From Bispira polyomma (Eukaryota), in contig OZ287748.1 of NCBI GenBank assembly GCA_965649765.1, positions 10,726,001-10,790,000 on the forward strand: a stretch of DNA of 64,000 bases. The letters are read 5' to 3'. This document shows positions 6,001-62,480 of this stretch, one piece after another. The translations under genes and the position numbers were made by a program. The notes beneath the pieces were generated by a model that saw only the letters and a list, made by a program, of their open reading frames with translations, was not told the DNA's origin and did not search any database. Positions within the stretch are counted from its first letter, which is position 1. Each line of letters starts with the position of its first letter.

Positions 6001-8775
6001 ATTTCTGTGGAAACCTGTTCAGTTTTTGTGGCTGCAGTGGTTTCCAGGTTATCAGTTTGAGTAGAGAAAATGTCTGAAGATGAAGCTAACAAAGGATTGC
6101 TTGTACCTGTGGTATCCGTCAAATCTCTTTGGGTAGTATCAGTATTCAATTCGGTGGAAACATCAAGTTTTGTTCCTGTTGTTACTAATATGTTGTCGGA
6201 GGTGGTCACAGATAGAACATTACTTGTCGAAACAACACTTGTTTGTATGTCTGTAGAAGAATCGGTCACAGTTGATTCTTTAGATGTTTCAGAAACCACA
6301 GAATCTTCAGTTGTTTCCATTGATGTAATTGTTACAGCCGTTTCAGTATCACTTGGAGAAGTCACTATTGTATCTGGTGTGGTTGTATATGTTGATATTT
6401 CATCACTGGAATATGTTCCAATGGAAGTGGAGCTAAGATCAATTGCTGATGAAGATGAAAAGTCTAATGTATTTGTCTCAGTAGTAAGTCCATCACTTGA
6501 TTCTGAGGTTGATGTAGTAGTTATTTTTAGTTCTGTGACTTCTGAAGTTTCACTTATTGTACCATCTGTTGGATCTATTGAGGTTGGTGCTACAGAAGGC
6601 ATTGTTTCAGATGTTTGGCTTTGGTCATGACTGGTTTCAGTGAAATTGGGTGGTGTCGTTTCAAATGGTTCAGTGCTTATTTTGATTGTATCTGTTGGCA
6701 CATCTACTTCAGATGTCAATGATGTCAAATCGTCAGTAGTCTCAAACAGAATAGATTGTGATGAAAAGCTTTGAGAACTGTTTTCCATGATTTCTGTGGA
6801 AACCTGTTCGGTTTTTGTGGCTGCAGTGGTTTCCAGGTTATCAGTTTGAGTAGGGAAAATGTCTGAAGATGAAGCTAACAAAGGATTGCTTGTACCTGTG
6901 GTATCCGTCAAATCTCTTTGGGTAGTATCAGTATTCAATTCGGTGGAAACATCAAGTTTTGTTCCTGTTGTTACTAGTATGTTGTCGGAGGTGGTCACAG
7001 ATAGAACATTACTTGTCGAAACAACACTTGTTTGTATGTCTGTAGAAGAATCGGTCAAGGTTGATTCTTTGGATGTTTCAGAAACCACAGAATCTTTAGT
7101 TGTTTCCATTGATGTAATTGTTACAGCCATTTCAGTATCACTTGGAGAAGTCACTATTGTATCTGGTGTGGTTGTATATGTTGATATTTCATCACTGGAA
7201 TATGTTCCAATGGAAGTAGAGCTAAAATCAATTGCTGATGAAGATGAAAAGTCTAATGTATTTGTTTCAGTAGTAAGTCCATCACTTGATTCTGAGGTTG
7301 ATGTAGTAGTTATTTTCAGTTCTGTGACTTCTGAAGTTTCACTTATTGTACCATCTGTTGGATCTATTGAGGTTGGTGCTACAGAAGGCATTGTTTCAGA
7401 TGTTTGGCTTTGGTCATGACTGGTTTCAGTGAAATTGGGAGGTGTCGTTTCAAATGGTTCAGTGCTTATTTTGATTGTATCTGTTGGCACATCTACTTCA
7501 GATGTCAATGATGTCAAATCGTCAGTAGTCTCAAACAGAATAGATTGTGATGAAAAGCTTTGAGAACTGTTTTCCATGATTTCTGTGGAAACCTGTTCAG
7601 TTTTTGTGGCTGCAGTGGTTTCCAGGTTATCAGTTTGAGTAGAGAAAATGTCTGAAGATGAAGCTAACAAAGGATTGCTTGTACCTGTGGTATCCGTCAA
7701 ATCTCTTTGGGTAGTATCAGTATTCAATTCGGTGGAAACATCAAGTTTTGTTCCTGTTGTTACTAATATGTTGTCGGAGGTGGTCACAGATAGAACATTA
7801 CTTGTCGAAACAACACTTGTTTGTATGTCTGTAGAAGAATCGGTCACAGTTGATTCTTTAGATGTTTCAGAAACCACAGAATCTTCAGTTGTTTCCATTG
7901 ATGTAATTGTTACAGCCGTTTCAGTATCACTTGGAGAAGTCACTATTGTATCTGGTGTGGTTGTATATGTTGATATTTCATCACTGGAATATGTTCCAAT
8001 GGAAGTGGAGCTAAGATCAATTGCTGATGAAGATGAAAAGTCTAATGTATTTGTCTCAGTAGTAAGTCCATCACTTGATTCTGAGGTTGATGTAGTAGTT
8101 CTTTGTAGTTCTGTGACTTCTGAAGTTTCACTTATTGTACCATCTGTTGGATCTATTGAGGTTGGTGCTATAGAAAGCATTGTTTCAGATGTTTGGCTTT
8201 GGTCATGACTGGTTTCAGTGAAATTGGGTGGTGTCGTTTCAAATGGTTCAGTGCGTATTTTGATTGTATCTGTTGGCACATCTACTTCAGATGTCAATGA
8301 TGTCAAATCGTCAGTAGTCTCAAACAGAATAGATTGTGATGAAAAGCTTTCAGAACTGGTCTCTATGATTTCTGTGGAAACCTGTTTGGTTTTTGTGGCA
8401 TCGGTAGTTTCCAGGTTACCAGTTTGAATTGAAAAAATGTCTGAAGATGAAGTTGACAAAGGATTGCTTGTACCTGTGGTATCTGTCAAATCTCTTTGGG
8501 TAGTATCAGTATTCAATTCGGTGGAAACATCAAGTTTTGTTCCTGATGTTACTAATATATTTGGGGTGGTCACAGATGGAGGATTACTTGTCAAAACAAC
8601 ACTTATTTGCACATCTGTAGAAGAATCGGTCACAGTTGATTCTTCAGATTTTCCAGAAACCACGGAATCTTCAGTTGTTTCCATTGATGTAAATGTTACA
8701 AGCATTTGATTATCACTTGGAGAAGTCACAATTGTATCTGGTGTTGTTGTATATGATATTTCATCACTAGAATAT
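1..8775. repeat. Coding tandem repeat, 789-bp unit (263 aa), about 11 copies within the window
   Basis: GTTTCCATTGATG recurs at 1, 790, 1579 and so on; the shadow ORFs recur every 789 bp (547, 1336 ... 7648, 8437); the unit nearest 8.4-8.8 kb is the most diverged. Confidence 0.98.
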
Positions 8776-9166
8776 GTGACAGAAGCAGAATTGTCATCCT
8801 CTACTGTTGAAGCCAGTCCTGCTATACTCTTTTCTTGATCTAAAAAAGTGTTTGGGGAAGTGTTGGAGAAAAATTTGCCCAGAAATTTGGTAGACAAAAA
8901 GGTGAAATCATTTACTGCTGAAGAAGCAGTGCTGAATGCACCTATTTCTGTGTCATTTGCAGTAGATGACATAGGAATAGTTTTTGGAGAGGATGATGCA
9001 TCTTCTGTGGTGCTAAAAATATCACGTTTTTGACTGTGACTAGACTGTTCATTTTCTGGAGTTGTGAAGTTCTTTATCTCTGCTGTAGTAATAGATCTAT
9101 TTGGTGTGCTAGTTGTGCTGAGATCAATTGCGGCTGTATTTACCTTTGTTGTTTTCCCATTGGATT
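1..9166 (-). CDS. Giant exon of a mucin-like (Thr/Ser/Glu/Asp-rich) glycoprotein, 3' incomplete
   Basis: Acceptor attttaatatacAG before 9166. The frame reads SNGKTTKVNTAAIDLSTTSTPNRS... then repeats such as TYSSDKISTYTTTPDTIVTSPSDTETAVTITSMET. No stop seen in the parts translated by hand; the indels in the terminal unit are 3 nt; the frame continues beyond position 1. Confidence 0.9.
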
Positions 9167-20400: not shown

Positions 20401-22608
20401 ATGGAATTGATAAACTTAATAATATTTGTATTTATCAGTTCAGCACATTTTTCAGTATTTTTTTTCAGAAAACCTAAAATACCAGCTGGTATTGTTTGGA
20501 AGAGTCAAACAAATGCCACACAGCATTTAGATGATCATTTGACCTTAGAGCAGTTAAAACATGCATGTTTTCCGCCAAGGGCCAGTGAATATGAAAGGGA
20601 GAAGGTCATGTATGTCACTTTGTTTGGAAATAAAGTGAAATAATTTCTCAATCACACCCAAAGACTCAAACATCACCAAACTGCACATTTCCATTAAGGG
20701 TGCCAATCCAGATGCAAGGGATAAGAATATTATAGATTTGAATAACTTGCAAGGCAGTGACATTGAGGAACTGTGGATAGTCCAGAGTGAAAATACTCCA
20801 TTGGAATATAGCCAGGTACATTACTTTAAAGTGAAGTTAGGTTTTAAAAAGTCACAGAAGCAAAACTCTTATGATCAAACACCATTGTGTCTTAGAAAGC
20901 TATATATACACATGACTTTGGATGAACCAGAATGGTTAGTAAAACTCATCCAGCAAACCAAGTATCTTAGCATTCTGAGTCTAGTTGGTACAGAAAGCTT
21001 GGGTGTCAATTCTGCTTTGAAGAAGATAATGGTGGCTTTGAAAGAGCTTGACCAATACTAATTGATTAACGAGTTTTATGAAGACCACATCAATACAACA
21101 CAGCTGTTTACTCCGCTTGAAAACTCTGCCGTGTAATGTCTTTCACTGAGACAAAATGGACTGAGGTCCATCACCCCCGGTATAACAAATATTTTCCTAA
21201 GTTTAAGGATTGTCGACCTCAGTTATAACTACCTTTTTAATGCAAATAATGGTGCAATGTTGTTAGAACTGCTGCCCATGAGCGAATCAATAGAATTGAT
21301 TAATTTATCAACACAGGGAGACTTCCAGACAGGAACACATGGTTAATATAAACATCATTCTTCTCAGTGGCTATCAATCCCGGACAAAATCAAGGAATGC
21401 TTTAAGATTTTCAACACCAACTTTATTAAAGCTTATAGTCGCTATGTACTAGAGTTTTTCCACAGTTGAGCGTACTTGATTTTTCAAACACAATTATCAG
21501 TGTCATTCCAAAGGATATTTTTTATAATTGCAGTTGTATAACACAAATAAACCTGGCACAAAATGATTTGAGATAAATTATGCTGGACATAAACAAGACG
21601 TCACCTGTGGAATATCTAAATCTTAGTTATAATCAAATTAGAACTCTCACAAAGCCATGAGAGAGACACTTCTGCAATTTGATCATCAACAAGGACTGGT
21701 GATAGACCTTTATCAGAATCAAATGGTATGCGATTGTACAGAAGATGCTTACAAGACTATAGAACAAATTCAACAATCTGAACAACACAATATAACGTTT
21801 TATCAAAGAGATAAATATGAATGTATTTACATGAATCACCCAAATCAGTTTCTAGTGGAGGTAAACTTGTTAGCCAAGCCACTATAAACTCCTTGCTTAT
21901 GTCAGTGTTTCACTATTAATTATTGTTTTAATGGCCATTACCTTGTGGCTTGTACATAAGTACAGGTACCACATCTACACTTGGTACTACAGGTGCAGGT
22001 ATAGTAAATATCGGAAAAGACGAAGCATGCCTGCCAATTACAAATACGATGCTTTCATCTTGTATTGTGCAGAAGATAGAGTTTGGGTGCATGATGTCTT
22101 AATGACGACATTACAAAATAAATATAGTTTTAAGCTGGTGATTCTCCTAAGGGACTTCCTAGTAGGAGAGCATATTGATGATGAAATTGTCCACCACATG
22201 GCTCTTAGCCCCACCAATATCAACATCATGAGTGATAATTCGGTGAAGAAACAATGGCCCAAATTTGAACTGAAAAGAGCATACACTGAGTCGCACACTG
22301 AGAACAAACCCTTGATTGTAGTGAAGTTTGGCCAGATTACTACACCAAAAGAGAAACTGTCAGGACTTGTACAGCAGATATTAGACAGCAAGGTATACAA
22401 TGAGTGGCCAGAGTTTTCTAAGAACAGTGGCAAGACGCTGAAAGCGGTATCAGTCGCAAGAAGGCAAAAATTATTTTGGGAAAAGCTAGCACAAGCTATC
22501 TACGAAAACAGTCAGCCACTGTGGGGATGTGAAAGATGTCAGAACAATGTAGAACCAGTTGATTTCAAAGATACGTTGTTAAATGATTCAGATGAAAATG
22601 ATAATTAA
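20401..22608 (+). pseudogene. Toll-like receptor pseudogene, paralog of 27160-29886; TIR-region ORF 21931-22608 still open
   Basis: In-frame TAA at 20641, ~21134, ~21344 and ~21574; frameshifts at ~20659, ~21045, ~21650 and ~21870; about 500-bp deletion at ~21435 relative to the intact copy. Confidence 0.92.
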
Positions 22609-27159: not shown

Positions 27160-29886
27160 ATGGAATTTATAAACTTAATAATATTGGTATTTATCAGTTC
27201 AGCAAATAGTTCAGTGCTTGCCAGAAAACCTGAAATACCAACTGTGATTGATTGGAAAACACAGGATTTCGATGATGGTTTGACCTTAGAACAATTGAAG
27301 CATGTATGTTTTCCAACAAGGGACAGTGAATATGAAAGGAAGGACGTCACATATGTCACTATGTTTGGGAATGAAGTAAAATCATTTCTCAATCACACCA
27401 AAGACTCAAATATCACCAAACTGCACATTTCCATCAAGGGCGCCAATCCAGATGCAAGGGATAAGAATATTATGTATTTGGATTACTTGCAAGGCAGTAA
27501 TATTGAAGAACTGTGGATAGTCCCGAGTGAAAATACTCCACTGGAAGATAGTCAGGTGTATTACTTTAAACTTAGGTTATCATTTATGAAACATTTAAAG
27601 GAAGACTCTACTGATGAAACACCATTGTCTCTTAAAAAGCTATATATACACGTGGCTTTGGATGAACCAGAAGGGTTGGTAAAACTCCTCCAGCAAACCA
27701 AGTACCTTAGTATTCTGAGTCTAGTTGGTACACAAAGCTTGAGTGTCAATTCTGCTTTGAAAAAGATAATGATGGCTTTGACAGACCAGCCTATCTCAAT
27801 CTTGAGACTTAACCAATACCAAGATGAGATTTATGAAGACCACATCAATATGTCACAGCTGTTTACTCCACTTCAGAACTCTACCATACAATGCCTTTCT
27901 CTAAGACAAAATGAACTGAGGTCCATCACCCCAGGTATAACAGTCATATTGCCTAGGTTACGGATTCTTGATCTGAGTTACAACTATTTAGTTAATGCAA
28001 ATAATGTGGCAATGTTGTTGGAACTGCTGACCATGAGTAAATCGATAGAATTGATCAATTTATCGACACAGGGAGACTTCCAGCCAGTGACACATGGTCG
28101 ATATAAACGTCATTCTTCTCAGTGGCTATCAATTCCGGATAGGATAAAAGAATGCTTTAAGATTGTCAACACCAACTTGATTAAAGCTTCTCTAAACAGG
28201 ACGGCATGGTGTCAAACGATACAGTGTCTTAACATGTCCATACTTCACGGTATACCCTGTTCTTCATTTCCTTCAGTGCAGCAGCTCTTTAGAGCGTATG
28301 ATGTAACATGTTACCCGCCGATAAAACTACCTGTTTCTCCCAATCTTAAAGAGCTTTACTTAGATTATATTAGCTCTGTGATAAGTGTAAAATACAATCA
28401 TTTTGAAGAATCGTTGCCAACTTGTATTGCAGAGAATCAGTTGTCAACATTAACTTCAGCTTACAATGCTGTTTCATTCAAGAAGTTATATTTTGATAAG
28501 ATGTTGAAAACATCCAGAGTAAGAGGCATGACAAACTTATTTGTTCTTGATATGAGTTTTGGTAAGTTGAGAATTTCTCCGTATGATAGTGCATTCTTGA
28601 AGAGTGTTACACAAGTAAAAAATCTCTATGTACAGGGAAATTTTCTTGACTTTGAAGAAAAAAATAGCTCAAATACATTACAGCCTAGAAGCAAATCACT
28701 ATGTACCAGAGTTTTTCCTCAGTTGAAAGAGATTGATTTTTCAAACACTAACATCAGTGTCATTCCAAAGGATATTTTTTACAATTGCAGTTATATAACC
28801 CGAATAAATCTGGCACAAAATGATTTGACCGAAATTACATTAGACATAAACAAGACGTCACCTGTAGAATATCTGAATCTGAGTTATAATCAAATTAAGA
28901 TTCTTAACAAAGACATGAGGCAGACTCTTCTGCAATTTGATCATCAACAAGGACTGCTGATAGACCTTTATCAGAATCAAATGGTATGTGATTGTACAGA
29001 AGATGCTTACAAGACTATAGAACTAATTCAACAATCTGAACTGCACAATATAACGTTTTATCAAAGAGATAAATATGAATGTATTTACATGAATCACCCA
29101 AATCAGTTTCTAGTGGAGGTAAACTTGTCAGAACTAAGATCTTACTGTCAGCCAAGCTACTATAAACTCCTTGCTTATATCAGTGTTTCACTATTAATTT
29201 TCCTTTTAATGGTTATTACATTATGGCTTGTACATAAGTACAGGTACCACATCTACACGTGGTACTACAGATGTGGGTATAGTAAATACCGGAATAAACG
29301 AAGTACTACTGCCAATTACAAATACGATGCTTTCATCTCGTATTGTGCAGAAGATCGATTTTGGGTGCATGATGTCTTAATGACGACATTACAAAATAAA
29401 TATGGTTTTAAGCTGGTGATTCACCTGAGAGACTTCCTAGTGGGAGAGCATATTGATGATGAAATTGTCCGCCACATGGCTCTTAGCCGCACCAATGTCA
29501 TTATCATGAGTGATAATTCAGTTAAGAAACAATGGCCTGAGTTTGAACTGAAAAGAGCATACACTGAGTCGCACACTGAGCACAAACCCCTGATTGTAGT
29601 AAAGTTTGGCCGGATTTCTACACCAAAAGAGGAGTTGTCAGGACTTGTACAGCAGATATTAGACAGCAAGGTATACAATGAGTGGCCAGAGTTTTCTGAG
29701 AACAGTGGCAAGACACTGAAAGCAGCATCAGTCGCAAGAAGGCAAGAATTGTTTTGGGAAAAGCTAGCACAAGCTATCTACAGAAACAGTCAGCCACTGT
29801 GGGGATGTGGAAGATGTCAGAACAATATAGAGCCAGGTGATTTCAATGACATGTTGTTAAATGATTTAGATGAAAATGATGACTAA
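27160..29886 (+). CDS. Toll-like receptor (signal peptide, LRRs, LRRCT, TM, TIR), single coding exon, 908 aa
   Basis: LRR motifs LSLRQNEL, LRILDLSYNYL, LKEIDFSNTNISVIP, INLAQNDL and YLNLSYNQI; LRRCT NQMVCDC; TM LLAYISVSLLIFLLMVITLWLV; TIR box1 YDAFISY, box2 RDFLVG, box3 FWEKL; AATAAA at 29945. Confidence 0.97.
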   Translation: MEFINLIILVFISSANSSVLARKPEIPTVIDWKTQDFDDGLTLEQLKHVCFPTRDSEYERKDVTYVTMFGNEVKSFLNHTKDSNITKLHISIKGANPDARDKNIMYLDYLQGSNIEELWIVPSENTPLEDSQVYYFKLRLSFMKHLKEDSTDETPLSLKKLYIHVALDEPEGLVKLLQQTKYLSILSLVGTQSLSVNSALKKIMMALTDQPISILRLNQYQDEIYEDHINMSQLFTPLQNSTIQCLSLRQNELRSITPGITVILPRLRILDLSYNYLVNANNVAMLLELLTMSKSIELINLSTQGDFQPVTHGRYKRHSSQWLSIPDRIKECFKIVNTNLIKASLNRTAWCQTIQCLNMSILHGIPCSSFPSVQQLFRAYDVTCYPPIKLPVSPNLKELYLDYISSVISVKYNHFEESLPTCIAENQLSTLTSAYNAVSFKKLYFDKMLKTSRVRGMTNLFVLDMSFGKLRISPYDSAFLKSVTQVKNLYVQGNFLDFEEKNSSNTLQPRSKSLCTRVFPQLKEIDFSNTNISVIPKDIFYNCSYITRINLAQNDLTEITLDINKTSPVEYLNLSYNQIKILNKDMRQTLLQFDHQQGLLIDLYQNQMVCDCTEDAYKTIELIQQSELHNITFYQRDKYECIYMNHPNQFLVEVNLSELRSYCQPSYYKLLAYISVSLLIFLLMVITLWLVHKYRYHIYTWYYRCGYSKYRNKRSTTANYKYDAFISYCAEDRFWVHDVLMTTLQNKYGFKLVIHLRDFLVGEHIDDEIVRHMALSRTNVIIMSDNSVKKQWPEFELKRAYTESHTEHKPLIVVKFGRISTPKEELSGLVQQILDSKVYNEWPEFSENSGKTLKAASVARRQELFWEKLAQAIYRNSQPLWGCGRCQNNIEPGDFNDMLLNDLDENDD

Positions 29887-36336: not shown

Positions 36337-36852
36337 CTACGAAATATTGTTGTAATAGTTGTAGTGTAATAAATTTCATTTAATTATAAGGTATTAATTA
36401 ATGTCCATGTTATTAATGATTTATGAAAATTCAATACAAACTGAAATACTGGTGTGTTAAAATACTGTTTAAAATTTTAATCAGTATAAGTTAGTATGAC
36501 ACACAGATTAGTTCATACACAAACTAGAAACAGAGTAAACCATAACATAACCACATGACATATTGAGTTTGATAGAAAATATTTTGAATTCCTGCAATCG
36601 ATTCAAAACAGATGTTGTATTTGAAAGATTATTAAACTGAAGTCACAACTGTAATTCAAAAAATGAAACCAAGGTAGTACCCCTAATACATATTTTTAGA
36701 TTTATAAAGTCACAATAAATATCTGTACTCTGACTATTACTTTCTGCTATTTAATCCAAATTTAGTTTGACACAAATGTGCCCAACTATCAGACACAGAT
36801 AATGACAATACGCCGACAGTAACTGACATGTGACTGAAAAGGCTATACCTAC

Positions 36853-37430
36853 CAAATAAACATAAGGCACAAAGAAGCCAAACATCACAAAGAAAAGTGC
36901 AAAGAGCCATATTAAGTACACTTTATTTTTCCAGAGCTGCAACTCTTTCATAACTTTTCTTGCTATTGGCACTCTCACTGCATGCTCAATATCTGCCTTA
37001 TCAACTTTGGTCAGCGGCCTCAACTGCAGTGCACAGACGAAGCCAATCACGCAAGTCCCAGCAAAGCAGCGGAATGTTTTTCTCCAGCCGATCCAATCTA
37101 CAAGTACCTGAGATAGCGGGGAGAGCAATAGAGTGCCCACACTTGTGCCAGACATCATGATGCCAGTGGCCAGAGCGACATACTTATCAAAGTAGTCCGT
37201 CGCTATGGTCATACACGGGGTATAGTTCAGTGTACAGCCGACCGCATAAAGGAAAGTGAAGGTACCGTACATCTGAGTGAGGCTGGTGGTATAGGAAGAC
37301 AGGACCAATGCCAGGGCACAGACTACGGAACCGGAAGCTGCCACTGCCTGCTTCCCAAACTTCTTGATCAGTAGGCTAGACAGGGGTGCTAGGAGCATGT
37401 TAATCCCATAGCAGGCTGATCCTACCCAGG
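36853..37430 (-). CDS. SLC16 transporter exon 2 (TM2-TM7)
   Basis: Acceptor tgtgtttcAG; A-WVGSACYG...YFDKYVALATGIMMSGTSVG...GWRKTFR...FGFFVPYVYL; donor GTAGGT, phase 0. Confidence 0.95.
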
Positions 37431-52762: not shown

Positions 52763-54200
52763 TCTGTGAGAATGCCAACGAACGGTGTTAATTCTACGTA
52801 AATATAAGATTCTATGGAAAAAATCACCCAATTAGGAATCCAGAAGAAATCGTAAACATATCTACTCCTTATTATATAGCACCCTAAATCAACAATTGTT
52901 AATTGTGAGAAAATATGGTAATAATTAAGCATTTTTGTAATGTAAATTGCAAATTAAAGATAAAACTAAGATTTAGGAAAATGCATCAAAAATGTACATA
53001 TAAGTATATGTAGCATATGGAGCTAAATGTGTCTGATCAAGGTTTTTTTCTGCAGAATTAAGTCAGATTGGACTGTGTCACCTCTTATGCTATTGGGGCT
53101 AAGTGGTACTCATTGTTGATATATGACTAGTACTTAATGAGGCAAAAACATACTTATGCATTATAGATAATGTGGGCATTACTAATGAATATGTCTTCTT
53201 TATTGTAGTTTATGTGTGTTCTTATAACAGGAAATGAGTACTGCTCTAGTAAATTAGTTAGGATTCAGAACAGTGATCAATATTACATGTAAAAATGCAC
53301 TAGTTTCTCTTATAAGGAGGACCATGGAATGATTGAAGTTATAAATAATTTATTGTTGACTTCTATCTTTTAACCTTTTTATATATGAATTTAACCACCT
53401 CTTAAAAGCAGTTAGTTAATTACCAATTACCAGGTACAACGTCACAGGAGATGCTAGGCCCTGATTTCGAAGGAAATTATTATACAAATTTTTCAAGTAG
53501 CAGTATTAAGGATAACAAATATAACAAAATAAATAAATAAATATATAACAGTTGATTAATATTATAAAATAAAGTAGAGTCAATATGAAGTATATGTATA
53601 CGAAGAAGATATTATTATCACAATTAAATTACTTGACTACAATGCAATGCTATTCAAGGTCTCTGTGTAACAAATCACAATACATCAATTTACTAAACTG
53701 AAGTAGAAGATAAGCTAGACTTCCTTGTTACTTTGTATTTAATAAATCTGTTCTGATATATATATTCTCTAATATAGAGTCTCACTGATTAACACACCAA
53801 AAAAGTTAATATTAGTTATCACACCATGTATATATCACAGAACACTTAAAAACAAATACACCAGTCTCCTGCAAATAAATATCTGCTAGCTATGGTTTGA
53901 TATGTCATGAACATAGAAGTATTCAACACTAATAAACTACTCATCAATACTTATGCATCTATACAGTTCCTTGGCACTAAATGCCTCGTATGCCAAAAGG
54001 TTGCAGACATACAGCTGCTAAATATGATGAAGATATCTCTGGATTGCAGACAACATACTTCCCAATGTTCTAAGTTTAAGGTCAAAGCAGTACTTATCAA
54101 TGCTAATGTGTAAATGGAGGCTAACATTTATAGAAAAATGTAATACATACTTTCTAAATTGTTGCACACAAGTTATTTATTACAAGAACGTTCCATACTT

Positions 54201-55220
54201 TTAATTCTCACAGAGCTGAAAAAACTTTTGTTCACCAGCTACTATTGTGTCTGCCCAACTTTGGACAGCCTTCAAAATGGTATCATCTTTCTTCTCATAC
54301 CTCATTATAAAATGCTTTGCCATTGCTTCCCTTCTCCTGGTCATCCTATCTTTATCCTCAAAGTCAGTCCTTTGAACCCTAGCCTCCAGCACTGTCTGCT
54401 GGTCCTCTGTCAGCACATCATTCTTAAACAAATCTAGTTGAATTACATCCCATCCTGCTTCACCATCTATATCCACATCAAAAACTTCCCATTCATCTAG
54501 CCAAGGGCGTAGTTGTTGTGTAAAACAGCCATGGGTTTCATCTGGATCACAAACTCTAACAAAATCATCTTTATGCGATGGCCATGCCACACCTTCAAGA
54601 TCTGTATCAAATGTCACATAATCTGGGGTGTAATACCATCGAAGATCCTCTGGATTTAGCCAATCAGGACATAAGGGAAAGACACATTTATTAGGGTCAT
54701 CACCGGGTTGAATATTCTTGGTGCGTAATCTACCTCTTTTGTTAAAATATTCAGTTGTCTTTATCCTTTCCCTGCACCTGTCTGTGTACTCTTTTCTCCA
54801 TGATGCTGGCTTCCAATTTCCACCATTTTGTGCCCATGCTGGTAGCCACCCCAAATCCTCCTCCGGTTTTTCTTCATTCTTGTAATATGTGATCTCTTCA
54901 TTGAGAGTCTCCATGATGAGGCCAATATGTTCTCGGTATTCACTTTGTAATTGTTCATCATGTTCTTTCAGGCTCTTCTTACTTCCGTTGGAAGACAAGC
55001 TGATAATATCATCAGTAACAGCATTCCCAGCCCTGGAGGATTTAAGACTCTTTGCAGACAAGCTCCCACTCCCTTTCCATGGTACTTCAGTTTTAGTATT
55101 CACCTGTTTGCTTGCAGACAACCCAGACTGTGTTCTGGTCACATTGGGAGTTGGTTGTCTACCTATCACATCACTGGTAGTTTCCACTGTCTTGGTTGAA
55201 CTACTGCTACCACAACCCAT
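54201..55220 (-). CDS. Uncharacterised 339-aa protein with N-terminal myristoylation/palmitoylation motif (short paralog)
   Basis: Intact ORF starting MGCGSSS; C-terminal ~250 aa strongly conserved with the 607-aa paralog; upstream acceptor at 55277 and non-coding exon donor at 55706. Confidence 0.9.
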   Translation of the reverse strand: MGCGSSSSTKTVETTSDVIGRQPTPNVTRTQSGLSASKQVNTKTEVPWKGSGSLSAKSLKSSRAGNAVTDDIISLSSNGSKKSLKEHDEQLQSEYREHIGLIMETLNEEITYYKNEEKPEEDLGWLPAWAQNGGNWKPASWRKEYTDRCRERIKTTEYFNKRGRLRTKNIQPGDDPNKCVFPLCPDWLNPEDLRWYYTPDYVTFDTDLEGVAWPSHKDDFVRVCDPDETHGCFTQQLRPWLDEWEVFDVDIDGEAGWDVIQLDLFKNDVLTEDQQTVLEARVQRTDFEDKDRMTRRREAMAKHFIMRYEKKDDTILKAVQSWADTIVAGEQKFFQLCEN

Positions 55221-55706
55221 TACAGAAACTTTTATTTGGTTGAATAAGCCAGAAAATTTAGAATCCTTATTTTTATCTGTAAAATAAAAATGTATAAATG
55301 CAGTAGTTTGTTAGTATAGGTATGTACTTGTAATGTTTGATATGGCTGAACTATTCTTGCATTCTTACCACATAGTTAAAAAACAAATAGAATGTAGGCT
55401 TCAGTATGAGTACTAAAAATAAATTTGATGGAAATAAATTTAATGATCAAAATAAATTTATTGAGTGTAATACACAATACATGATCTACATAAATGCTGT
55501 TTTAACATTTTTTTGTTTTATGCACCAACATAATTTCTAGGTTTACATATTTCATTTATTACTGTTTCAGAAATGTATTTACCCATTAAAAGATTTTCAA
55601 TGACATTCATTGTAATTTAAATATGTTAATTACATCATAAGTTTTCTTTTCTTAATTCTGCAATATATTTTTTCTGATAAACAATAATATTTCCTTAAAG
55701 TCCTAC

Positions 55707-55875
55707 CTGTTTTGTCTGATAACTAGTGTATATATCCTATAATTCCCTGGTAATGTTAGGTAACACCAAGTGTATTAACTTTATAAACAGATATCTTTAT
55801 CAGCAGAAAATATTGTAATTAACTCTGATAATGCACACCCAATGGGTGTACTAAATACCGTTCAATAATTGAACT
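55707..55875 (-). promoter_or_regulatory. Non-coding first exon and TATA/GATA core promoter of the short MGCGSS gene
   Basis: CAG|GTAGGA donor, TATAAA at 55780-55785 and GATA motifs; the block is conserved at 62481-62645. Confidence 0.55.
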
Positions 55876-55877
55876 TA

Positions 55878-56568
55878 TGTGTGGCTCACACTTATGTGTT
55901 TGCTAAAGAGACACCCGTGCGTCTGCTGTGAGAACGCTGTGAGAAGCTGGTCGCTATAATGGCCCCAATAACGAGGTCGGGAGGTGTTATAATCACATAG
56001 AATGCAAGCAAGATTACAAAATTCAGAATTTACCTTCTTTGTAGTATGCATTGTACAAAACTGCACAAAATGCGCCAGGCATTTGTGAAAACTGCATGCT
56101 AACAGCATGGTCACAGCAGGATGGATGTTCTAGAAACACAAGGATCGAGTTGATAATACATCGCCATCGCAATAAATGTGTAGTAATGGTGTAGAGATCG
56201 CCCTATTCGAGTGGAGCAGGTACAACATTAGTCCTGTGCACGCCTAATTAGACCCCCCCCCACAGAAAGTATAAAGATAGATGGTGGTGCATTCTCAAGG
56301 CTGTCCCAACCATCAAAAATGACTTAAAAATACATTACAACTTTATCTTTCATCATTTATAAGGTAACTTGGGAGTCATATGCAGTGAAAACATAGACAT
56401 GCAGTGGCCGCATAAATTGCATAAAGAACGAGTTGTCATTGTGTTAGGGTCGAATTAAGAATGCATGGCAACTGCTAAAAAATATGCACCGTTCAATGTC
56501 GACGATTCATAGAAATCATAGTTTGTATGGGAATCCCTTGTTTAGATCGTGTAAGTGTGACCCGGCCT
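55878..56568. mobile_element. PIF/Harbinger-like non-autonomous element with TTA target duplication
   Basis: Absent from the paralogous site (~62650), where the flanks are contiguous; TTA at 55875-55877 and 56569-56571; TIR core GG(C/G)TCACACTTA. Confidence 0.8.
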
Positions 56569-56881
56569 TTAAGTTTCCACCACTGGATGTTCATGTACAC
56601 AAACCAAAATGCGATACTGAGAGTTATACCAAATCATTAACAATAAGTAAACTAATACATCACGTCTTCTTAAATAGTAAAAGGTCTCTTCAGTGTATTG
56701 GGACACGTAACTGCATTTTAAACGCTTGTACTGGTCTATTTTTAGCAGTTAGATGATTTCATTATCATCTTAAAGTATTGTTGAATCTCTCCCAGGTATT
56801 TCATGTATTAAGTTCTATTATATACTAATTAAAGATTTACAGTGCCTCTATTAAAGTTAAGGAATAAAGTATATAATAATA

Positions 56882-57087
56882 TTAGTATTTGCCCTTTGTA
56901 TAAATCACTACGAGATAAATATATCCCTTATGCCTCAATTTGTAACTATTTAAATTTTATAAATATAATGTCATCTCAGAACCCATCTAAAATTTCTAAC
57001 TTATCATGTTTTTTATATCATAGTTTTAAAGTAAAAGAATTGTTTTTGATTTGTAATCAGTGTTATTGAAAAAAAAAAAAAAAAAAA
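56882..57087 (+). mobile_element. LINE extreme 3' end with poly(A)
   Basis: ICPLYKSLRDKYI...FINIMSS..NLSCFLY is a typical LINE ORF2 C-terminus; A-run at 57069-57087; similarity to the paralogous unit stops here. Confidence 0.75.
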
Positions 57088-57625
57088 TTTACCTTGCCTT
57101 CAGACCACAAAAGTTACCTGGATTGACCCAGATTAAAGCAGATATGGTGTCAGACTGAACGTTCCTGATCTAAGTCAAACCATATAAAAAGGAATCCTAT
57201 TCCAGTGGTGGCTTTGAGCAGATTGACCCTTGTTGAGCTCAATCTGTGTTGAGTGGGGTTATAGTGTGAAGTACTGTAAGGCTTTGGATTTTAGCAGAGT
57301 GGGCTATAGATTGTAATCCAATCTGGTAGACTCCTCTTCCGACAGGGCTATAATAGAGTTAGAGGTGGATTACTCTTGGTTAGGTCCCGGTCCCACTGGA
57401 TTTACGTTAGGCTATGTTACTCCCGCAGGGTCACGCAGATATTCAAAATTCCACTCACAAGCAAAATAATTATTTCAGAACCTTAAACCTATGCTAAAAC
57501 TTATATCAATGTATGCAAAAACAGTCATTTGACGACGCGAGGAGATGCATTATTTTATGTTGAAGCCCATTAGACTAGGTGAATATCTAAGTAAAGCCAT
57601 GTTGTTTTACACTGAGAGTTGCTAA

Positions 57626-58141
57626 TGGGCCAGTCCCACCGGATTGACGTTAGTCTATGTCAACCACGCAGGGCTCTCGCAAATATTCGCAGAAGTCCAC
57701 GCAGTTGAAAACCCTACGCGAAAATCTATTTATTTACATTAAAGACTTTAAGTTACGCACAGATACACGTATTTGTATGTCAATACCTGTAAAGACACAC
57801 AGCTGATGCAAAAATTCACGTAAATGTGTACGCAAAGACACGCAAATACCTGTAAGACGACGCAAATGCAGACGTCAGAGGCCGTAATATTACGTTAAAC
57901 CATGTCATTTATTATGTTATATGTACGTTTTCCTATGTAATCTGTCACAAGGTTATGTTTTTTACGTTAATATAGGTAATGGTACGTTGATTTGTATGTA
58001 ATCTTACACTTTATTACCATCTCTAACGCCAGGTTATGCACCTTAATGTATGTCACGTCAGCTCCTGCCAATACCACACAAACCCTATGCAGAATTAATT
58101 TCCTAACGACCACTTACGTGAAAGCCGGTAGGACTGGCCCA
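57626..58141. mobile_element. PIF/Harbinger-like MITE
   Basis: TAA-TGGGCCAGTCCCACCGG ... CCGGTAGGACTGGCCCA-TTA; ACGCA-rich interior. Confidence 0.8.
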
Positions 58142-60176
58142 TTAAGGACTCTAGACTACGCCCCCTCTCGTATAACCATATAAATATTTACGTTTACACA
58201 CTTTAAATCTGACAGGCTTTTTATGAGCAACTTTCAAAAATTTTAATTTCTTGCAAACCATCTCAGAAGCCAGGTTATGTGCATGCACATACAACATGGC
58301 AAAGCATGCAAACTCCATGCAAGCCCCATGCCAACTTATTTTTTACACGAGATCTAGCGTGATGACCGGTGGGACCCAGACAATAACAACTTCACTTTCT
58401 TGATGCTTTGACACAAATAGCTAGAAGACTTCTGTACCTGATTGCAATTTTTATCTCACCCAGAATTATTAAAGTTGTGGCACTGATAACTAATCATTGA
58501 AATTTCTGGTAGAAATAAAAAACAAGATATGCTTTAAGTTGTTTATGCAATACTAGTTATCAATGTCCTAAGACAGGTAATAGATAAATTTTCTTTGTAT
58601 TTTAAAATGGAAATATAAGAGAATGATCCTCTTTGTTGATGCTTAATGTCTGTGAGATAGTTCGATTACACAAATAGAACACTTCAGAAGCTTGATTGTA
58701 CTGTCTGTAGTCCTAAATTATAAGTTTACGAGATTGACACTGATTACTGATTACGCATTAATTTCTCTAGTCTGGATGCTTAACCCAGATTCAGTTAAAT
58801 CTGTTTTAATCCGGATCAATCAGGATTATTCTAGAAAGATGTCATTTCGTCGTAGTCATCTGATATCTGAGATTAACATACTTGCTCATAATTTTGCTTC
58901 TCATTAATACACTCAGTGTAATATATGGCAAACCTTTTTAGACAAGTCATGGTCTTATTTATTCCAAATAATGAGTTGTAAGGAGAGTGCTTTAATGGTG
59001 TTTTCTATTTCATTATAGATGTTCTGATTTAAGCACACACACACGGGTCCTCTTTTTATATTGATCACATTTTTTGGCTTGTTCTCAAGTCCTAATTATA
59101 ATGCGTTAAAAAAGAATGTACACCAGATGATATAATAAAATGTGTAAAAGCACCTTGGCCATTAGATTAAAAACCTCCTTGTTTGATCCATTTTTTCCAG
59201 GATTTTCATTATCATGGGTTACTATGGGCTTTTAGTAATATTAATGTATCATGGAGATTTTAACTGTGGTAATTAACTGTGGTAACTGTGGTAATTGTGG
59301 CGTTGGAAACTCAGAATCCACTTAGCTAATCTAGATTTGTTTGTAATGAAGTTATTTCTTGGATTAGCTGAGTTTTGTTATGGAATTTTGGTTGTTTATT
59401 GAGTTTTGTTATGAGTGACTAGTACTTAATGAGACAGAAATTACAAACTGATTCCTGCATTGCAGATAATGCATATGTCTTCTTTATTGATGTTTATGTG
59501 AACCCATACAGCAGGAATAAAATGCTGCTCTTGTCAATTATAGTTAAGAATCAGTACAGATATAAATGTTGCAATGCACTAGTTTCTCTTATTAGGAGGG
59601 CCAAGGAATGATTGAAAAGATAAATAATTTACTGGTCACTTGTAGCTTTTAACTTATGTTTCTGTAAATTCAAATACCTTTTAAAAACAATTAGTTAATT
59701 AACCATTACAAAGTACAATTTCTAAGAAAATTATTGTCCAAATTGTTAAAGTAAAAGTATTAAGGATAGCAGATATAACAAATAACAAGCATATTATAGT
59801 TGATTGAAAATAAACAGTATTAAAAAAGATATAGACAATATGCAATATTCAGATTCTTTGTGCAACAAATTACAATAACATCAATTTATTAAACTGAAGT
59901 AGACGATAAGCTTGTCTTTCTTGTTACTTGGTATTTAATAAATCTGTTCGGAAAAATATTCTCTGATATAGAGTACCACAGATTAACACCAAAAATATTA
60001 ATAGCTTTCAGTTTGGATTAACATATATATCCCACCTATGTATGTATCACAGAATACTTGCCATTAAAAAAACAACATACACCAGCATCCTATAAAATTA
60101 TATCCTATAAACTCTGTAAATTATTGCACAGTTTTGCTTTCAGTCCAGTTATTTATTACAGAAACTCGCCAAACGT

Positions 60177-62000
60177 TTATTTCTCACAGAGCAACAGAAA
60201 ATGCTGTTCATCAGCTACTATTGTGTCTGCCCAACTTTGGACAGCCTTCAAAATAGTATCATCTTCCTTCTCATATTTCTTCATAAAATTATTTGCCATA
60301 TTATCCCTTCTTCTAGTCATTCTGTCTTTATCCTCAAGGTCAGTTCTTTGAGCTCTTGCATCCAGTACCGCCTGTTGGTCCTCTGTCAGCACATCATTTT
60401 TAAACAAATCTGGTTTAATGACATCCCACCCTGCTTCACCATCTATATCCACATCTAATGCTTCCCAATCATCCACCCAAGGGCGTAGTTGCTCTGCAAA
60501 ACATCCATGGATTTCATCCGGATCACAAACTCTAACAAAATCATCTGCATGAGATGACCATGCCAAATTGTCAATATTGGTATCAATTGGCACATAATCT
60601 GGGGTATAGTACCATCGAAGATCCTCTGGATTCAACCAATCAGGACATAAGGGAAAGACACATTTATTAGGATCATCACCGGGTTGAATATTATCAGTGC
60701 GTAATCTACCTCTTTTATTGAAATATTCACATGTCTTTATCCTTTCCCTACACCTGACTGTATACTCTTTTCTCCATAATTCTGGCTTCCAATTTTCACC
60801 ATTTTGTGCCCATGCTGGTAGCCACCACAAATCCTCCTCCGGTTCTTCTTCATTCTCGTAATATGTAATCTCTTCATTGAGGGTGTCTATGATGTTGCCA
60901 ATATGTTCTCTGAACTCATTTTGTAATTCTTCTTCTTCCTCAGGTGTTAACTTCTTAATTTTGATTACACCAGATTGACCATTATCTACAGCATCATCCT
61001 CTTTCAGGCTCTTCTTACTTCCTTTGGAAGATAAGCTGACAAGATCATCCGTGACAGCTTGTAGCATCCCATCTCCTTCGGTGTCGTTTTGACTAATACT
61101 GTTTGCTGCAACTTCTTCCTTCAAACTGCCATGACTCTGTTCTGAAGTGAAACTCATAGCATCTTCTCTGGCGTGATTTCCTTCTGTCTGTGTGGCATTG
61201 CTTTCAGGGTCCACACTTCCTTCTTCTTTTAATGATCTGACAGCTGACGATAAACTAGTATTGCTCTTTGTAACATAAGCATCATCCGGCTCTGTCTCAC
61301 TTTCTGCTTGATGTTGGACATTACCAGCCACACTTTCAGCCTTTAAGCTATTATGGCTTTTTGAAGACAAACTGACATTACTTTTGTTAATGTCATCTTG
61401 TTCTGGTTTTGCTTCACTCTCTGCTTGTACAGTACTATTTGTTGAAATACTTTCAATCTGCAAGCTCTGCTCACTCTTTGCAGACAAGCTAAGGTTACTT
61501 CTAGTCACATCACTTGGTTCAGTTTTAGCCTCACTCTGTCGTTTAACACTAGTGTTGCTTAATACACTTGCTGCCCTGGAGCTTTTGAGACTCTTGGAAG
61601 ATAAACTAGTATGGCTTTGTCTGATGCTATCCTGCAGGTCAGTCTTGGTTTCATGATTCCTTGCCACGGTACTGCTACTTAGGTTACTTCTGACCTTCAG
61701 ACTCTGTTGGCTCTTCAAAGATAAAGTAAGGCTTCGTCTGCTAACATTATCCTGAGGAGTCTGAGTCCCATTGTATCGTTTAGTACTATGGTGACTTGCA
61801 GCACTCCCAGCCCTGGACGATTTGATATTTTTTGCAGACAAGCTCCCACTTCCTTCCCGTGATACTTCAGTTTTAGGATGCACCTGTTTGTTTGTAGACA
61901 ACTCAGACTGTATTCTGGTCACATTGGGAGTTGGTTGTCTACCTGTGACATCACTGGTAGAGTTAACTGTCTTGGTTGAACTACTGCTACCACAACCCAT
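60177..62000 (-). CDS. Uncharacterised 607-aa protein with N-terminal myristoylation/palmitoylation motif and Ser/Lys repeat linker (long paralog)
   Basis: The ATG is at 62000 (the track starts one codon early at GTG); MGCGSSS; about 8 SLSxKSxxSLK-type repeats; conserved C-terminal domain. Confidence 0.92.
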   Translation of the reverse strand: MGCGSSSSTKTVNSTSDVTGRQPTPNVTRIQSELSTNKQVHPKTEVSREGSGSLSAKNIKSSRAGSAASHHSTKRYNGTQTPQDNVSRRSLTLSLKSQQSLKVRSNLSSSTVARNHETKTDLQDSIRQSHTSLSSKSLKSSRAASVLSNTSVKRQSEAKTEPSDVTRSNLSLSAKSEQSLQIESISTNSTVQAESEAKPEQDDINKSNVSLSSKSHNSLKAESVAGNVQHQAESETEPDDAYVTKSNTSLSSAVRSLKEEGSVDPESNATQTEGNHAREDAMSFTSEQSHGSLKEEVAANSISQNDTEGDGMLQAVTDDLVSLSSKGSKKSLKEDDAVDNGQSGVIKIKKLTPEEEEELQNEFREHIGNIIDTLNEEITYYENEEEPEEDLWWLPAWAQNGENWKPELWRKEYTVRCRERIKTCEYFNKRGRLRTDNIQPGDDPNKCVFPLCPDWLNPEDLRWYYTPDYVPIDTNIDNLAWSSHADDFVRVCDPDEIHGCFAEQLRPWVDDWEALDVDIDGEAGWDVIKPDLFKNDVLTEDQQAVLDARAQRTDLEDKDRMTRRRDNMANNFMKKYEKEDDTILKAVQSWADTIVADEQHFLLLCEK

Positions 62001-62480
62001 CACAGTAACTCTTCTTTGGTTAGAGTCAGGAATGTTAGAATCCTTATTTGTATCTCTAAAATATAAATATATATATATATATATATAAATATATATATGC
62101 AGGACTTATTTTATTTGTTGGTACAGGTATGTAATCTCTGATATGGCTAAAATATGCTTGCATTCTTGCAATAGTTAAAACACATAAAATGTAGGCTCCA
62201 ACACGAGTGCTTAAAATCCATTTAATGAAAATAAATTTAATGGAGGTCATGCACAAATACATTATGTATATAGATGCTGTTACAATACATTTTTGTTTTA
62301 TGCATCAATTTAATTTAGCTAACATAATATCTAGGTTTCCAGTATTCATTTATTACTATGTTATAACCTTATTTACCCATTCAAACTTTTCAAATGAGAT
62401 TTACTGTTATTAAAATATATTCTTTATCGGCAATGATATATATATTCTAATAAAACAGCAACATTTCTTTAAAGTATTAC

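Follow-up and report, generated by a model that had tools for sequence, protein, structure and literature searches.

The 64,000-nucleotide stretch of the Bispira polyomma genome analyzed here (contig OZ287748.1, positions 10,726,001 to 10,790,000; hereafter, the window) carries on its minus strand two of three tandem single-coding-exon paralogs that make up a cluster of a previously undescribed protein family, with the third paralog lying just beyond the window. The two genes, which we call gene 1 and gene 2, encode proteins that begin MGCGSSS, continue through a Ser/Thr/Lys-rich spacer, and end in a conserved C-terminal module that is under purifying selection and matches no described family in Pfam, PDB sequences or folds, the ESM Atlas, or the searchable literature. 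We give about even chances to the idea that these parts form a membrane-tethered adaptor package, in which an acylated start and a Ser-rich tether would serve a C-terminal binding module.

Two paralogs within a three-gene cluster

A preliminary description of the window had pointed to a pair of intact open reading frames (ORFs) that both start MGCGSSS and share a near-identical C-terminal region of about 250 amino acids (aa). Both ORFs are present at full length on the minus strand, at 54201-55220 and 60177-62000. When compared by BLASTP, their last 248 residues align without a gap and are 81% identical (200/248; E 1e-155), their first 69 residues are 75% identical (52/69), and gene 2 has about 268 additional residues in its middle relative to gene 1. 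All five sequence blocks that the preliminary description had quoted occur in both translations, though the last opens with KDD in the gene 1 protein and with EDD in that of gene 2, and the indels that it had noted in the flanks of the shared region are seen in the alignment. The ORF of gene 2 was listed as 60177-62003, where translation from a GTG one codon ahead of the ATG at position 62000 would give 608 aa; from this ATG, the protein is 607 aa long. The start codon of both genes is also conserved in relatives. The parts of the two genes are as follows, all on the minus strand.

54201-55220, minus: gene 1 coding sequence (CDS), short form, 339 aa plus stop, ATG start, beginning MGCGSSS (ORF list, BLASTP against gene 2, relatives P0001 and P0002)
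55200-55220, minus: gene 1 N-terminal MGCGSSS, a predicted signal for N-myristoylation at Gly2 and S-palmitoylation at Cys3, with Ser6 (sequence, and the consensus in PMC2132482)
54951-55199, minus: gene 1 Ser/Thr/Lys-rich low-complexity spacer, residues 8-90, 31% Ser+Thr and 1% aromatic
54204-54950, minus: gene 1 conserved C-terminal module, residues 91-339, with a helical hairpin, two Trp/acidic units and Arg-rich helices
54582-54644, minus: gene 1 Trp/acidic unit A, residues 193-213, LRWYY..FD..GVAW (pattern and unit-B profile)
54450-54512, minus: gene 1 Trp/acidic unit B, residues 237-257, LRPW..W..FD..I.GEAGW, holding the near-invariant G253 and W257
54204-54410, minus: gene 1 Arg-rich helical end, residues 271-339, with T271, Q274, R281, R284, R296 and R297, and L336/C337 near the C terminus (conservation and model confidence)
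55277-55316, minus: probable 3' splice site of a gene 1 5' untranslated region (5'-UTR) intron, with TACTAAC, a T-rich tract, and CAG ending 56 nt before the ATG; conserved in gene 2
54176-54181, minus: AATAAA, 20 nt past the gene 1 stop codon, with an equal context after gene 2
60177-62000, minus: gene 2 CDS, long form, 607 aa plus stop, beginning MGCGSSS (ORF list, BLASTP)
61980-62000, minus: gene 2 N-terminal MGCGSSS, a predicted acylation signal as in gene 1
60927-61979, minus: gene 2 Ser/Thr/Lys-rich spacer, residues 8-358, 29% Ser+Thr and 1% aromatic, 46.5% identical to the P0001 spacer
61164-61631, minus: four tandem repeats of about 39 aa in the gene 2 spacer, with S-x-S-L-S-S/A-K at residues 132, 171, 210 and 249, spaced exactly 39 residues apart
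60180-60926, minus: gene 2 conserved C-terminal module, residues 359-607 (BLASTP, genome searches)
62054-62059, minus: probable 3' splice site upstream of gene 2, a T-rich tract followed by TAGAG that aligns with the gene 1 site
60152-60157, minus: AATAAA, 20 nt past the gene 2 stop codon

The two proteins differ most visibly in the spacer, which runs to 83 residues in gene 1 and 351 in gene 2. Spacers contain 28-36% Ser+Thr and only 0-1% aromatic residues, whereas the module is 11-12% aromatic and 21-23% acidic. The repeats in the gene 2 spacer were not picked up by Tandem Repeats Finder (TRF), as their DNA copies are too diverged. Upstream of the coding sequences, a T-rich tract whose terminal AG lies some 55 nt from the ATG is kept in both genes, with TACTAAC ahead of it in gene 1, and it is probably the 3' splice site of a 5'-UTR intron. 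Because of this putative intron, the description of both genes as having a single coding exon is right, but calling them intronless may not be.

Selection on the coding sequence was assessed by comparing gene 1 with gene 2 (Nei-Gojobori). Within the module, nucleotide differences at first, second, and third codon positions number 28, 19, and 48, which agrees with the third-position enrichment reported earlier. The nonsynonymous rate (dN) is 0.099 and the synonymous rate (dS) 0.345, giving an omega of 0.286 (95% bootstrap confidence interval [CI], 0.18-0.46; Fisher p 4e-8), and none of 2000 bootstrap replicates reached 1. The proposal of a selected domain thus stands, with a dN/dS of 0.29 that is well below 1. 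For the 69 N-terminal codons, omega is 0.78 (CI, 0.35-2.4), a value that this small number of sites cannot separate from neutral evolution. The duplicated segment includes noncoding flanks as well, since the upstream regions are 77-83% identical over about 650-700 nt and patches of similarity extend up to about 960 nt downstream of the two genes.

A genome search placed a third family member on the minus strand at G000:C1:10791385-10792116, 1.4 kb past the window, and the supposed pair is therefore three tandem genes. The third paralog encodes 244 aa from an MGCTSSK start and is 27-32% identical to genes 1 and 2. Searching the whole genome (1.035 Gb in 75 contigs) with a family profile returned only these three copies, all in one cluster, in a search that multi-exon members could escape. 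Upstream of the third paralog and outside the window lies a short ORF (L003, 2939-3127, plus strand) with a G-x-D-G-L-P-x-E-F-Y stretch, which may be a fragment of a reverse transcriptase of the long interspersed nuclear element (LINE) type.

The same arrangement appears in close relatives. A word-indexed search returned P0001 (559 aa) and P0002 (314 aa), which are again a long and a short form. The third gene has its own counterpart in P0029 (64% identity). Because each of these three proteins is recorded on an 818,164-bp contig of another species, presumably one and the same contig, the three-gene cluster probably exists in this second species too. In Paralvinella palmiformis, P0075 and P0028 lie on one 980-kb contig under neighboring locus tags (LSH36_150g01005 and LSH36_150g01000), and tandem clustering of the family therefore occurs in an annelid as well. 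In P0004, P0025, and P0028, the core is present two or three times within one protein.

To place the copies relative to each other, a quick maximum-likelihood tree was built from 102 of 106 aligned rows, leaving out four with a core of less than 130 aa (Shimodaira-Hasegawa-like approximate likelihood-ratio test [SH-aLRT] supports are given in brackets). Gene 1 pairs with gene 2 (87) and P0001 with P0002 (96), so that the copies group by species, and the four together form one clade (100). Gene 3 and P0029 group together (100) far from this clade, and the third neighbor is consequently an old paralog. Module identity follows the same pattern, at 80% and 75% within the species pairs vs 60-66% across species. 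Despite this species-wise grouping of the modules, gene 2 and P0001 have in common a long spacer that is 46.5% identical. Taken at face value, these relationships would mean either that the short forms arose independently or that gene conversion homogenized the modules. If gene conversion occurred, dS dates the last conversion event rather than the duplication.

Contigs assembled from three sequencing runs (two samples from one study) match the gene 2 CDS from 60177 to 61942 with 0 differences, and no zero-difference contig piece lies over its first 58 bases (61943-62000). Because the contigs cover intergenic DNA too, they are DNA data, and they may come from the reads of the assembly itself rather than provide independent support. 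Apparent variants at 61945-61965 are not polymorphism but paralog cross-mapping, as the contig involved runs on into the gene 1 upstream region. Between the two genes, at 57500-57900, each of the three runs shows a contig word depth 30-90 times that on either side, along with numerous loose ends; this segment is a dispersed repeat.

Family breadth and conserved positions

The preliminary description had called these proteins orphans, but when 1.84 billion representatives were scanned exhaustively with phmmer, at least 102 related clusters (defined at 50% identity) came up at E<=1e-3, 57 of them at E<=1e-10 and 1 at E<=1e-30, with matches mostly over the last ~170 residues of the query. An organism name was available for 7 of the 30 representatives that were looked up (from Mizuhopecten, Aplysia, Mactra, Paralvinella [two proteins], Owenia, and Lingula) and for 4 of 11 matches in a further search (Littorina, Saccostrea, Nucella, and Batillaria). 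These 11 proteins come from 10 species in three phyla: seven are molluscs, and lineage lookups confirmed the other three as two annelids and one brachiopod. Nine of the 11 are labelled uncharacterized, hypothetical, or unnamed, and one further cluster member carries the automatic name "pakD-like." A restriction to Lophotrochozoa is the pattern of the named members and no proven limit, as most representatives are unnamed. Lophotrochozoans include molluscs, annelids, and brachiopods, several of which matter in aquaculture and neurobiology, and their genomes hold many lineage-specific genes without an assigned function.

Of the 103 members taken from databases, 35 begin MGC, and position 6 is Ser in 34 of these and Cys in the remaining one. 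The MGC start is also present in all three Bispira paralogs and in P0001, P0002, and P0029, and genes 1, 2, and 3 each have Ser6.

Conservation within the module was counted in an alignment of 106 family sequences. The best-kept positions, in gene 1 residue numbering, are these.

D175: kept in 96/100
N177: kept in 98/100
F181: kept in 90/102
R194: kept in 96/100
G253: kept in 99/104
W257: kept in 103/104
D268: kept in 92/106
T271: kept in 102/106
Q274: kept in 106/106
R281: kept in 105/105
R284: kept in 95/105
M293: kept in 88/106
R296: kept in 96/106
R297: kept in 98/106
L336: kept in 92/103
C337: kept in 78/102

The family invariants can be summarized as D-x-N, R, G...W, T..Q, R..R, and RR. 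One of the blocks shared by genes 1 and 2, WLPAWAQNG..NWKP, is an insertion confined to 4 of the 106 aligned members. The alignment contains no conserved Cys, His, or Ser nucleophile and no conserved set of metal ligands. This bears directly on the suggestion in the preliminary description that conserved C, C, C, H, and C residues bind metal or form an active site, which does not hold across the family: C179 is kept in 11/101 sequences, C184 in 4/99 (80 have Pro), C224 in 4/10, C232 in 7/92, and H230 in 54/90. Even the adjacent third paralog has none of the four Cys, with the His kept.

The core is internally duplicated, with two copies of the pattern L-R-x-W ... W-x-x-F-D ... G-x-A-W that lie in gene 1 at residues 193-213 (unit A) and 237-257 (unit B). 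When a family profile built on unit B was run against 101 members, 60 matched in the region of unit A at E<=0.01 and 49 did so at E<=1e-3, as against 0 of 101 shuffled controls; some short members with a single unit inflate this count somewhat, and gene 1 gives only a weak match of its own (E 0.47). Of 126 scanned sequences, 69 contain one or two copies of W..F[DE]; gene 1 has a single copy (WEVFD). The pattern is a putative match to the W-x-x-F-acidic endocytic docking motifs, which bind the adaptor appendage.

Other local motifs were considered. C337, in the context F..L-C, is possibly a second palmitoylation site or a residue with a structural role. It was rejected as a CaaX box for prenylation since it lies anywhere from 0 to about 4 residues from the C terminus. 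An EF-hand was likewise dismissed for D-V-D-I-D-G-E, whose spacing misfits the loop consensus and whose positions are not conserved. The C terminus of the proteins may resemble an AKAP-like amphipathic helix.

Known families, folds, and proposed function

Searches for known families agree with the earlier statement that none can be assigned, as Pfam and PDB sequence and profile searches gave no significant match over the domain and Foldseek and VIA-align returned chance-level helical hairpins only. With Pfam hmmscan, the sole match for genes 1 and 2 was PF14706 (E 0.092), whose 13 bits fall short of the 24-bit cut-off, and the 106 family members yielded no family over the C-terminal module. 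Matches to Vasohibin, T-box_assoc, and Tropomyosin, in one member each, were set aside because they look like fused gene models or low complexity. Against PDB sequences, phmmer and family-profile searches had best E values of 0.081 and 0.12, neither of them significant. In the ESM Atlas, the best score for the gene module was 0.83, under the lead level, and P0061, a compact longer relative (337 aa), had no usable match. The literature search did not find the family by accession or as a lophotrochozoan-specific myristoylated family, with the limit that supplementary tables might list members.

Structure prediction supports part of the claim that this is a folded domain. An AlphaFold2 model of the gene 1 module (53-row alignment) has an average predicted local distance difference test (pLDDT) of 74.2 and a predicted template modeling score (pTM) of 0.35, with helices at module residues 2-24, 48-71, 136-152, 182-192, 200-218, and 224-248. 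The helical ends are confidently modelled, with a pLDDT of 83-93 over the last 70 residues, but the Trp/acidic center reaches only about 53-70. The model of P0061 (69 rows; pLDDT 83.6, pTM 0.50) is similar in that its upstream module and C-terminal helices exceed 90 and its center lies at 53-69. Foldseek found no PDB match better than E 4 for either model. Among 48,161 chains, VIA-align gave a best Z of 5.9 (46 residues) for this module and 6.5 (66 residues; root mean square deviation [rmsd], 7.9 Å) for P0061, matches that are helical hairpins within the Z range common for helical models and that we regard as chance-level. The first two helices of the module also superpose on bMERB and other helical hairpins (MICAL1 and EHBP1) with a Z of 6.5-6.6 over 63-66 residues. 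This likeness was taken as chance, given an rmsd of 6.8-7.9 Å, an identity of 8-10%, and a Z common for helical models.

The N terminus, on the other hand, resembles a well-described signal. Met-Gly-Cys is the consensus for N-myristoylation of Gly2 and palmitoylation of Cys3 (PMC2132482), this dual acylation leads to rapid membrane binding and plasma-membrane anchoring (PMC2132482; PMC2200018), and Asn at position 6 blocks myristoylation (PMC2132482). The M-G-C-x-x-S start of both proteins fits this consensus, as previously suggested, and its Ser6 is a small residue of the permissive kind. SH4-type N termini such as those of the Src-family kinases Fyn and Lck and of G-alpha o/i are alike in the M-G-C start and Ser6, but the likeness ends at the first ~7 residues, and the genes here have no kinase, SH3/SH2, or G-alpha domain according to Pfam.

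Longer relatives carry an upstream module with an H-N...W...V-Y-D signature that recalls cytochrome b5 (PF00173). Pfam matched Cyt-b5 in 2 of 106 family members (best E 5e-4), and the P0061 model superposes on rabbit cytochrome b5 (Z 4.7; rmsd 4.7 Å; 79 of 94 residues) and on the b5-like domain of HERC2 (Z 4.5; 80 of 92 residues), although the likeness is weak in Foldseek (E 5-7). Cytochrome b5 differs in its H-P-G-G heme motif, which is not in the family consensus. It is plausible, though unproven, that the upstream module of these longer relatives is a degenerate b5-like domain. Genes 1 and 2 have no Pfam match to PF00173, and genes 1, 2, and 3 are all without the upstream module.

Based on these features, we propose that Gly2 of the SH4-like M-G-C-x-x-S start would be N-myristoylated and Cys3 palmitoylated, anchoring the proteins to the cytoplasmic face of a membrane. 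The Ser/Thr/Lys-rich spacer, which is likely disordered, would act as a flexible and probably phosphorylatable tether, and the paralogs would differ mainly in the length of this tether. The module, with its ~170-aa family-wide core of a duplicated Trp/acidic unit (L-R-x-W ... W-x-x-F-D ... G-E-A-A-W) and an Arg-rich helical end, would be placed beside the membrane by the lipid anchor and bind a partner there, and the invariant arginines may read an anionic ligand. A binding role is favored over a catalytic one because there is no conserved nucleophile or metal-ligand set, and because the models consist of helices and extended Trp/acidic segments with no pocket.

Several observations weigh against this adaptor proposal. 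Acylation is predicted from the start motif, and 61 of 103 family members start with a Met that is not followed by GC or G, 2 have MG without Cys, and 5 are fragments without an initial Met; some non-MGC members may be poor gene models and others may truly lack the motif. Global confidence in the model is low (pTM 0.35, pLDDT 74), so that its center (~53-70) could be a fold or a series of linear motifs, and the fold searches barely covered the middle of each model (about residues 86-193 for the gene 1 module). None of the three listed runs is on record as RNA, and the contigs over the locus span intergenic DNA as well. The partner or ligand of the module is hypothetical. Finally, the invariant polar residues (D-x-N, T, Q, and five R) could equally line an active site.

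This last point leads to the rival that we consider quite unlikely but not negligible, namely that the C-terminal core is a new-fold enzyme acting on a membrane substrate such as a lipid head group or a membrane protein, with D-x-N, T..Q, and the arginines as its active site. There are eleven polar or charged positions with a conservation of 90% or more among the 106 sequences, including Q274 (106/106) and R281 (105/105), which is stricter than in many pure scaffolds, and a lipid anchor would deliver the protein to such a substrate. Yet an enzyme of this kind would have to do without a conserved His, Cys, or Ser nucleophile or a metal-ligand set, no Pfam or PDB enzyme was matched, and the models are mostly helices and low-confidence coil without a pocket-forming sheet. 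A closer variant of the favored package, and one that we hold to be unlikely, makes these proteins analogues of GAP43, MARCKS, and BASP1, in which the basic amphipathic helix R292-K311 would reversibly bind acidic phospholipids and/or calmodulin under control of spacer phosphorylation. The analogy draws on the lipid anchor or acylation motif, the long low-complexity spacer rich in Ser/Thr/Lys, and a strongly basic, conserved, and confidently predicted helix with R..R and RR. In contrast to GAP43, MARCKS, and BASP1, to which there is no sequence similarity, nor to other known proteins, the proteins here close with a module that is long, strictly conserved, and rich in aromatic residues (12% W+F+Y) and whose helices are confidently modelled, and no IQ or other calmodulin motif was identified in them.

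The metal-binding or redox domain of Cys, His, and Asp residues put forward in the preliminary description now appears very improbable. C179, C184, C224, H230, and C232 are indeed kept in the four closest sequences (gene 1, gene 2, P0001, and P0002), but since the Cys residues are not kept across the family and the adjacent paralog lacks all four, a site specific to this subfamily cannot be the family function. We give hardly any credence to the remaining view, in which the genes are non-functional, whether as decaying duplicates, transposon cargo, or chance ORFs. The coding part is intronless, a dispersed repeat lies in the intergenic region, and no listed run is recorded as RNA, all of which speaks for such a view; yet it is difficult to reconcile with an omega of 0.29 that no bootstrap replicate brought to 1, with two ORFs intact at full length, and with a family that has only 3 copies, in one cluster, in a 1.04-Gb genome and relatives in three phyla.

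Going beyond the adaptor proposal itself, we also entertain, as a doubtful extension, that the ~170-residue core is a new fold and a lophotrochozoan-specific, membrane-proximal signaling or trafficking module, in which the Trp/acidic units would dock and the invariant arginine cluster would read an anionic ligand, for example a phosphoinositide or a phosphoprotein. Such a core may ancestrally have been coupled to a degenerate, heme-less cytochrome-b5-like sensor, with the three Bispira genes as stripped-down, lipid-anchored versions that differ in tether length.

Uncharacterized lineage-specific families are common, so that finding one is not surprising in principle, and the targeting signal is a well-known one that offers no new mechanism so far. 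This family stands out for its at least 102 clusters, about a dozen strictly conserved positions, and a membrane-targeting signal in a third of its members, while being absent from Pfam and the PDB. It is a well-defined candidate for study by structural and cell-biological means and for an entry as a new domain, and the predictions on membrane localization and on a partner of the Arg-rich end are directly testable.

Other features of the window

The DNA of the window is eukaryotic, with about 35% G+C, and the neighbors of the two genes are animal genes. At 21931-22608 (plus strand), an ORF of 225 aa encodes a TIR domain (PF01582, E 3.8e-14), and at 27160-29886 (plus strand) a single ORF of 908 aa encodes a Toll-like receptor with leucine-rich repeats (LRR) and a TIR domain. 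No link between these two ORFs and the MGC genes was found. A match to the Major Facilitator Superfamily (PF07690, E 1.1e-22) at 36751-37398 (minus strand) is probably one exon of a transporter.

The first part of the window (1-8800) is a tandem satellite with a period of 789 bp, at least 11 copies that are 97-100% identical, and a strong GC skew of +0.24. It was not found by TRF, which has a 500-bp limit. The period is a multiple of 3, and an ORF of 210 aa (3631-4263, plus strand) without a Pfam match lies inside the satellite.

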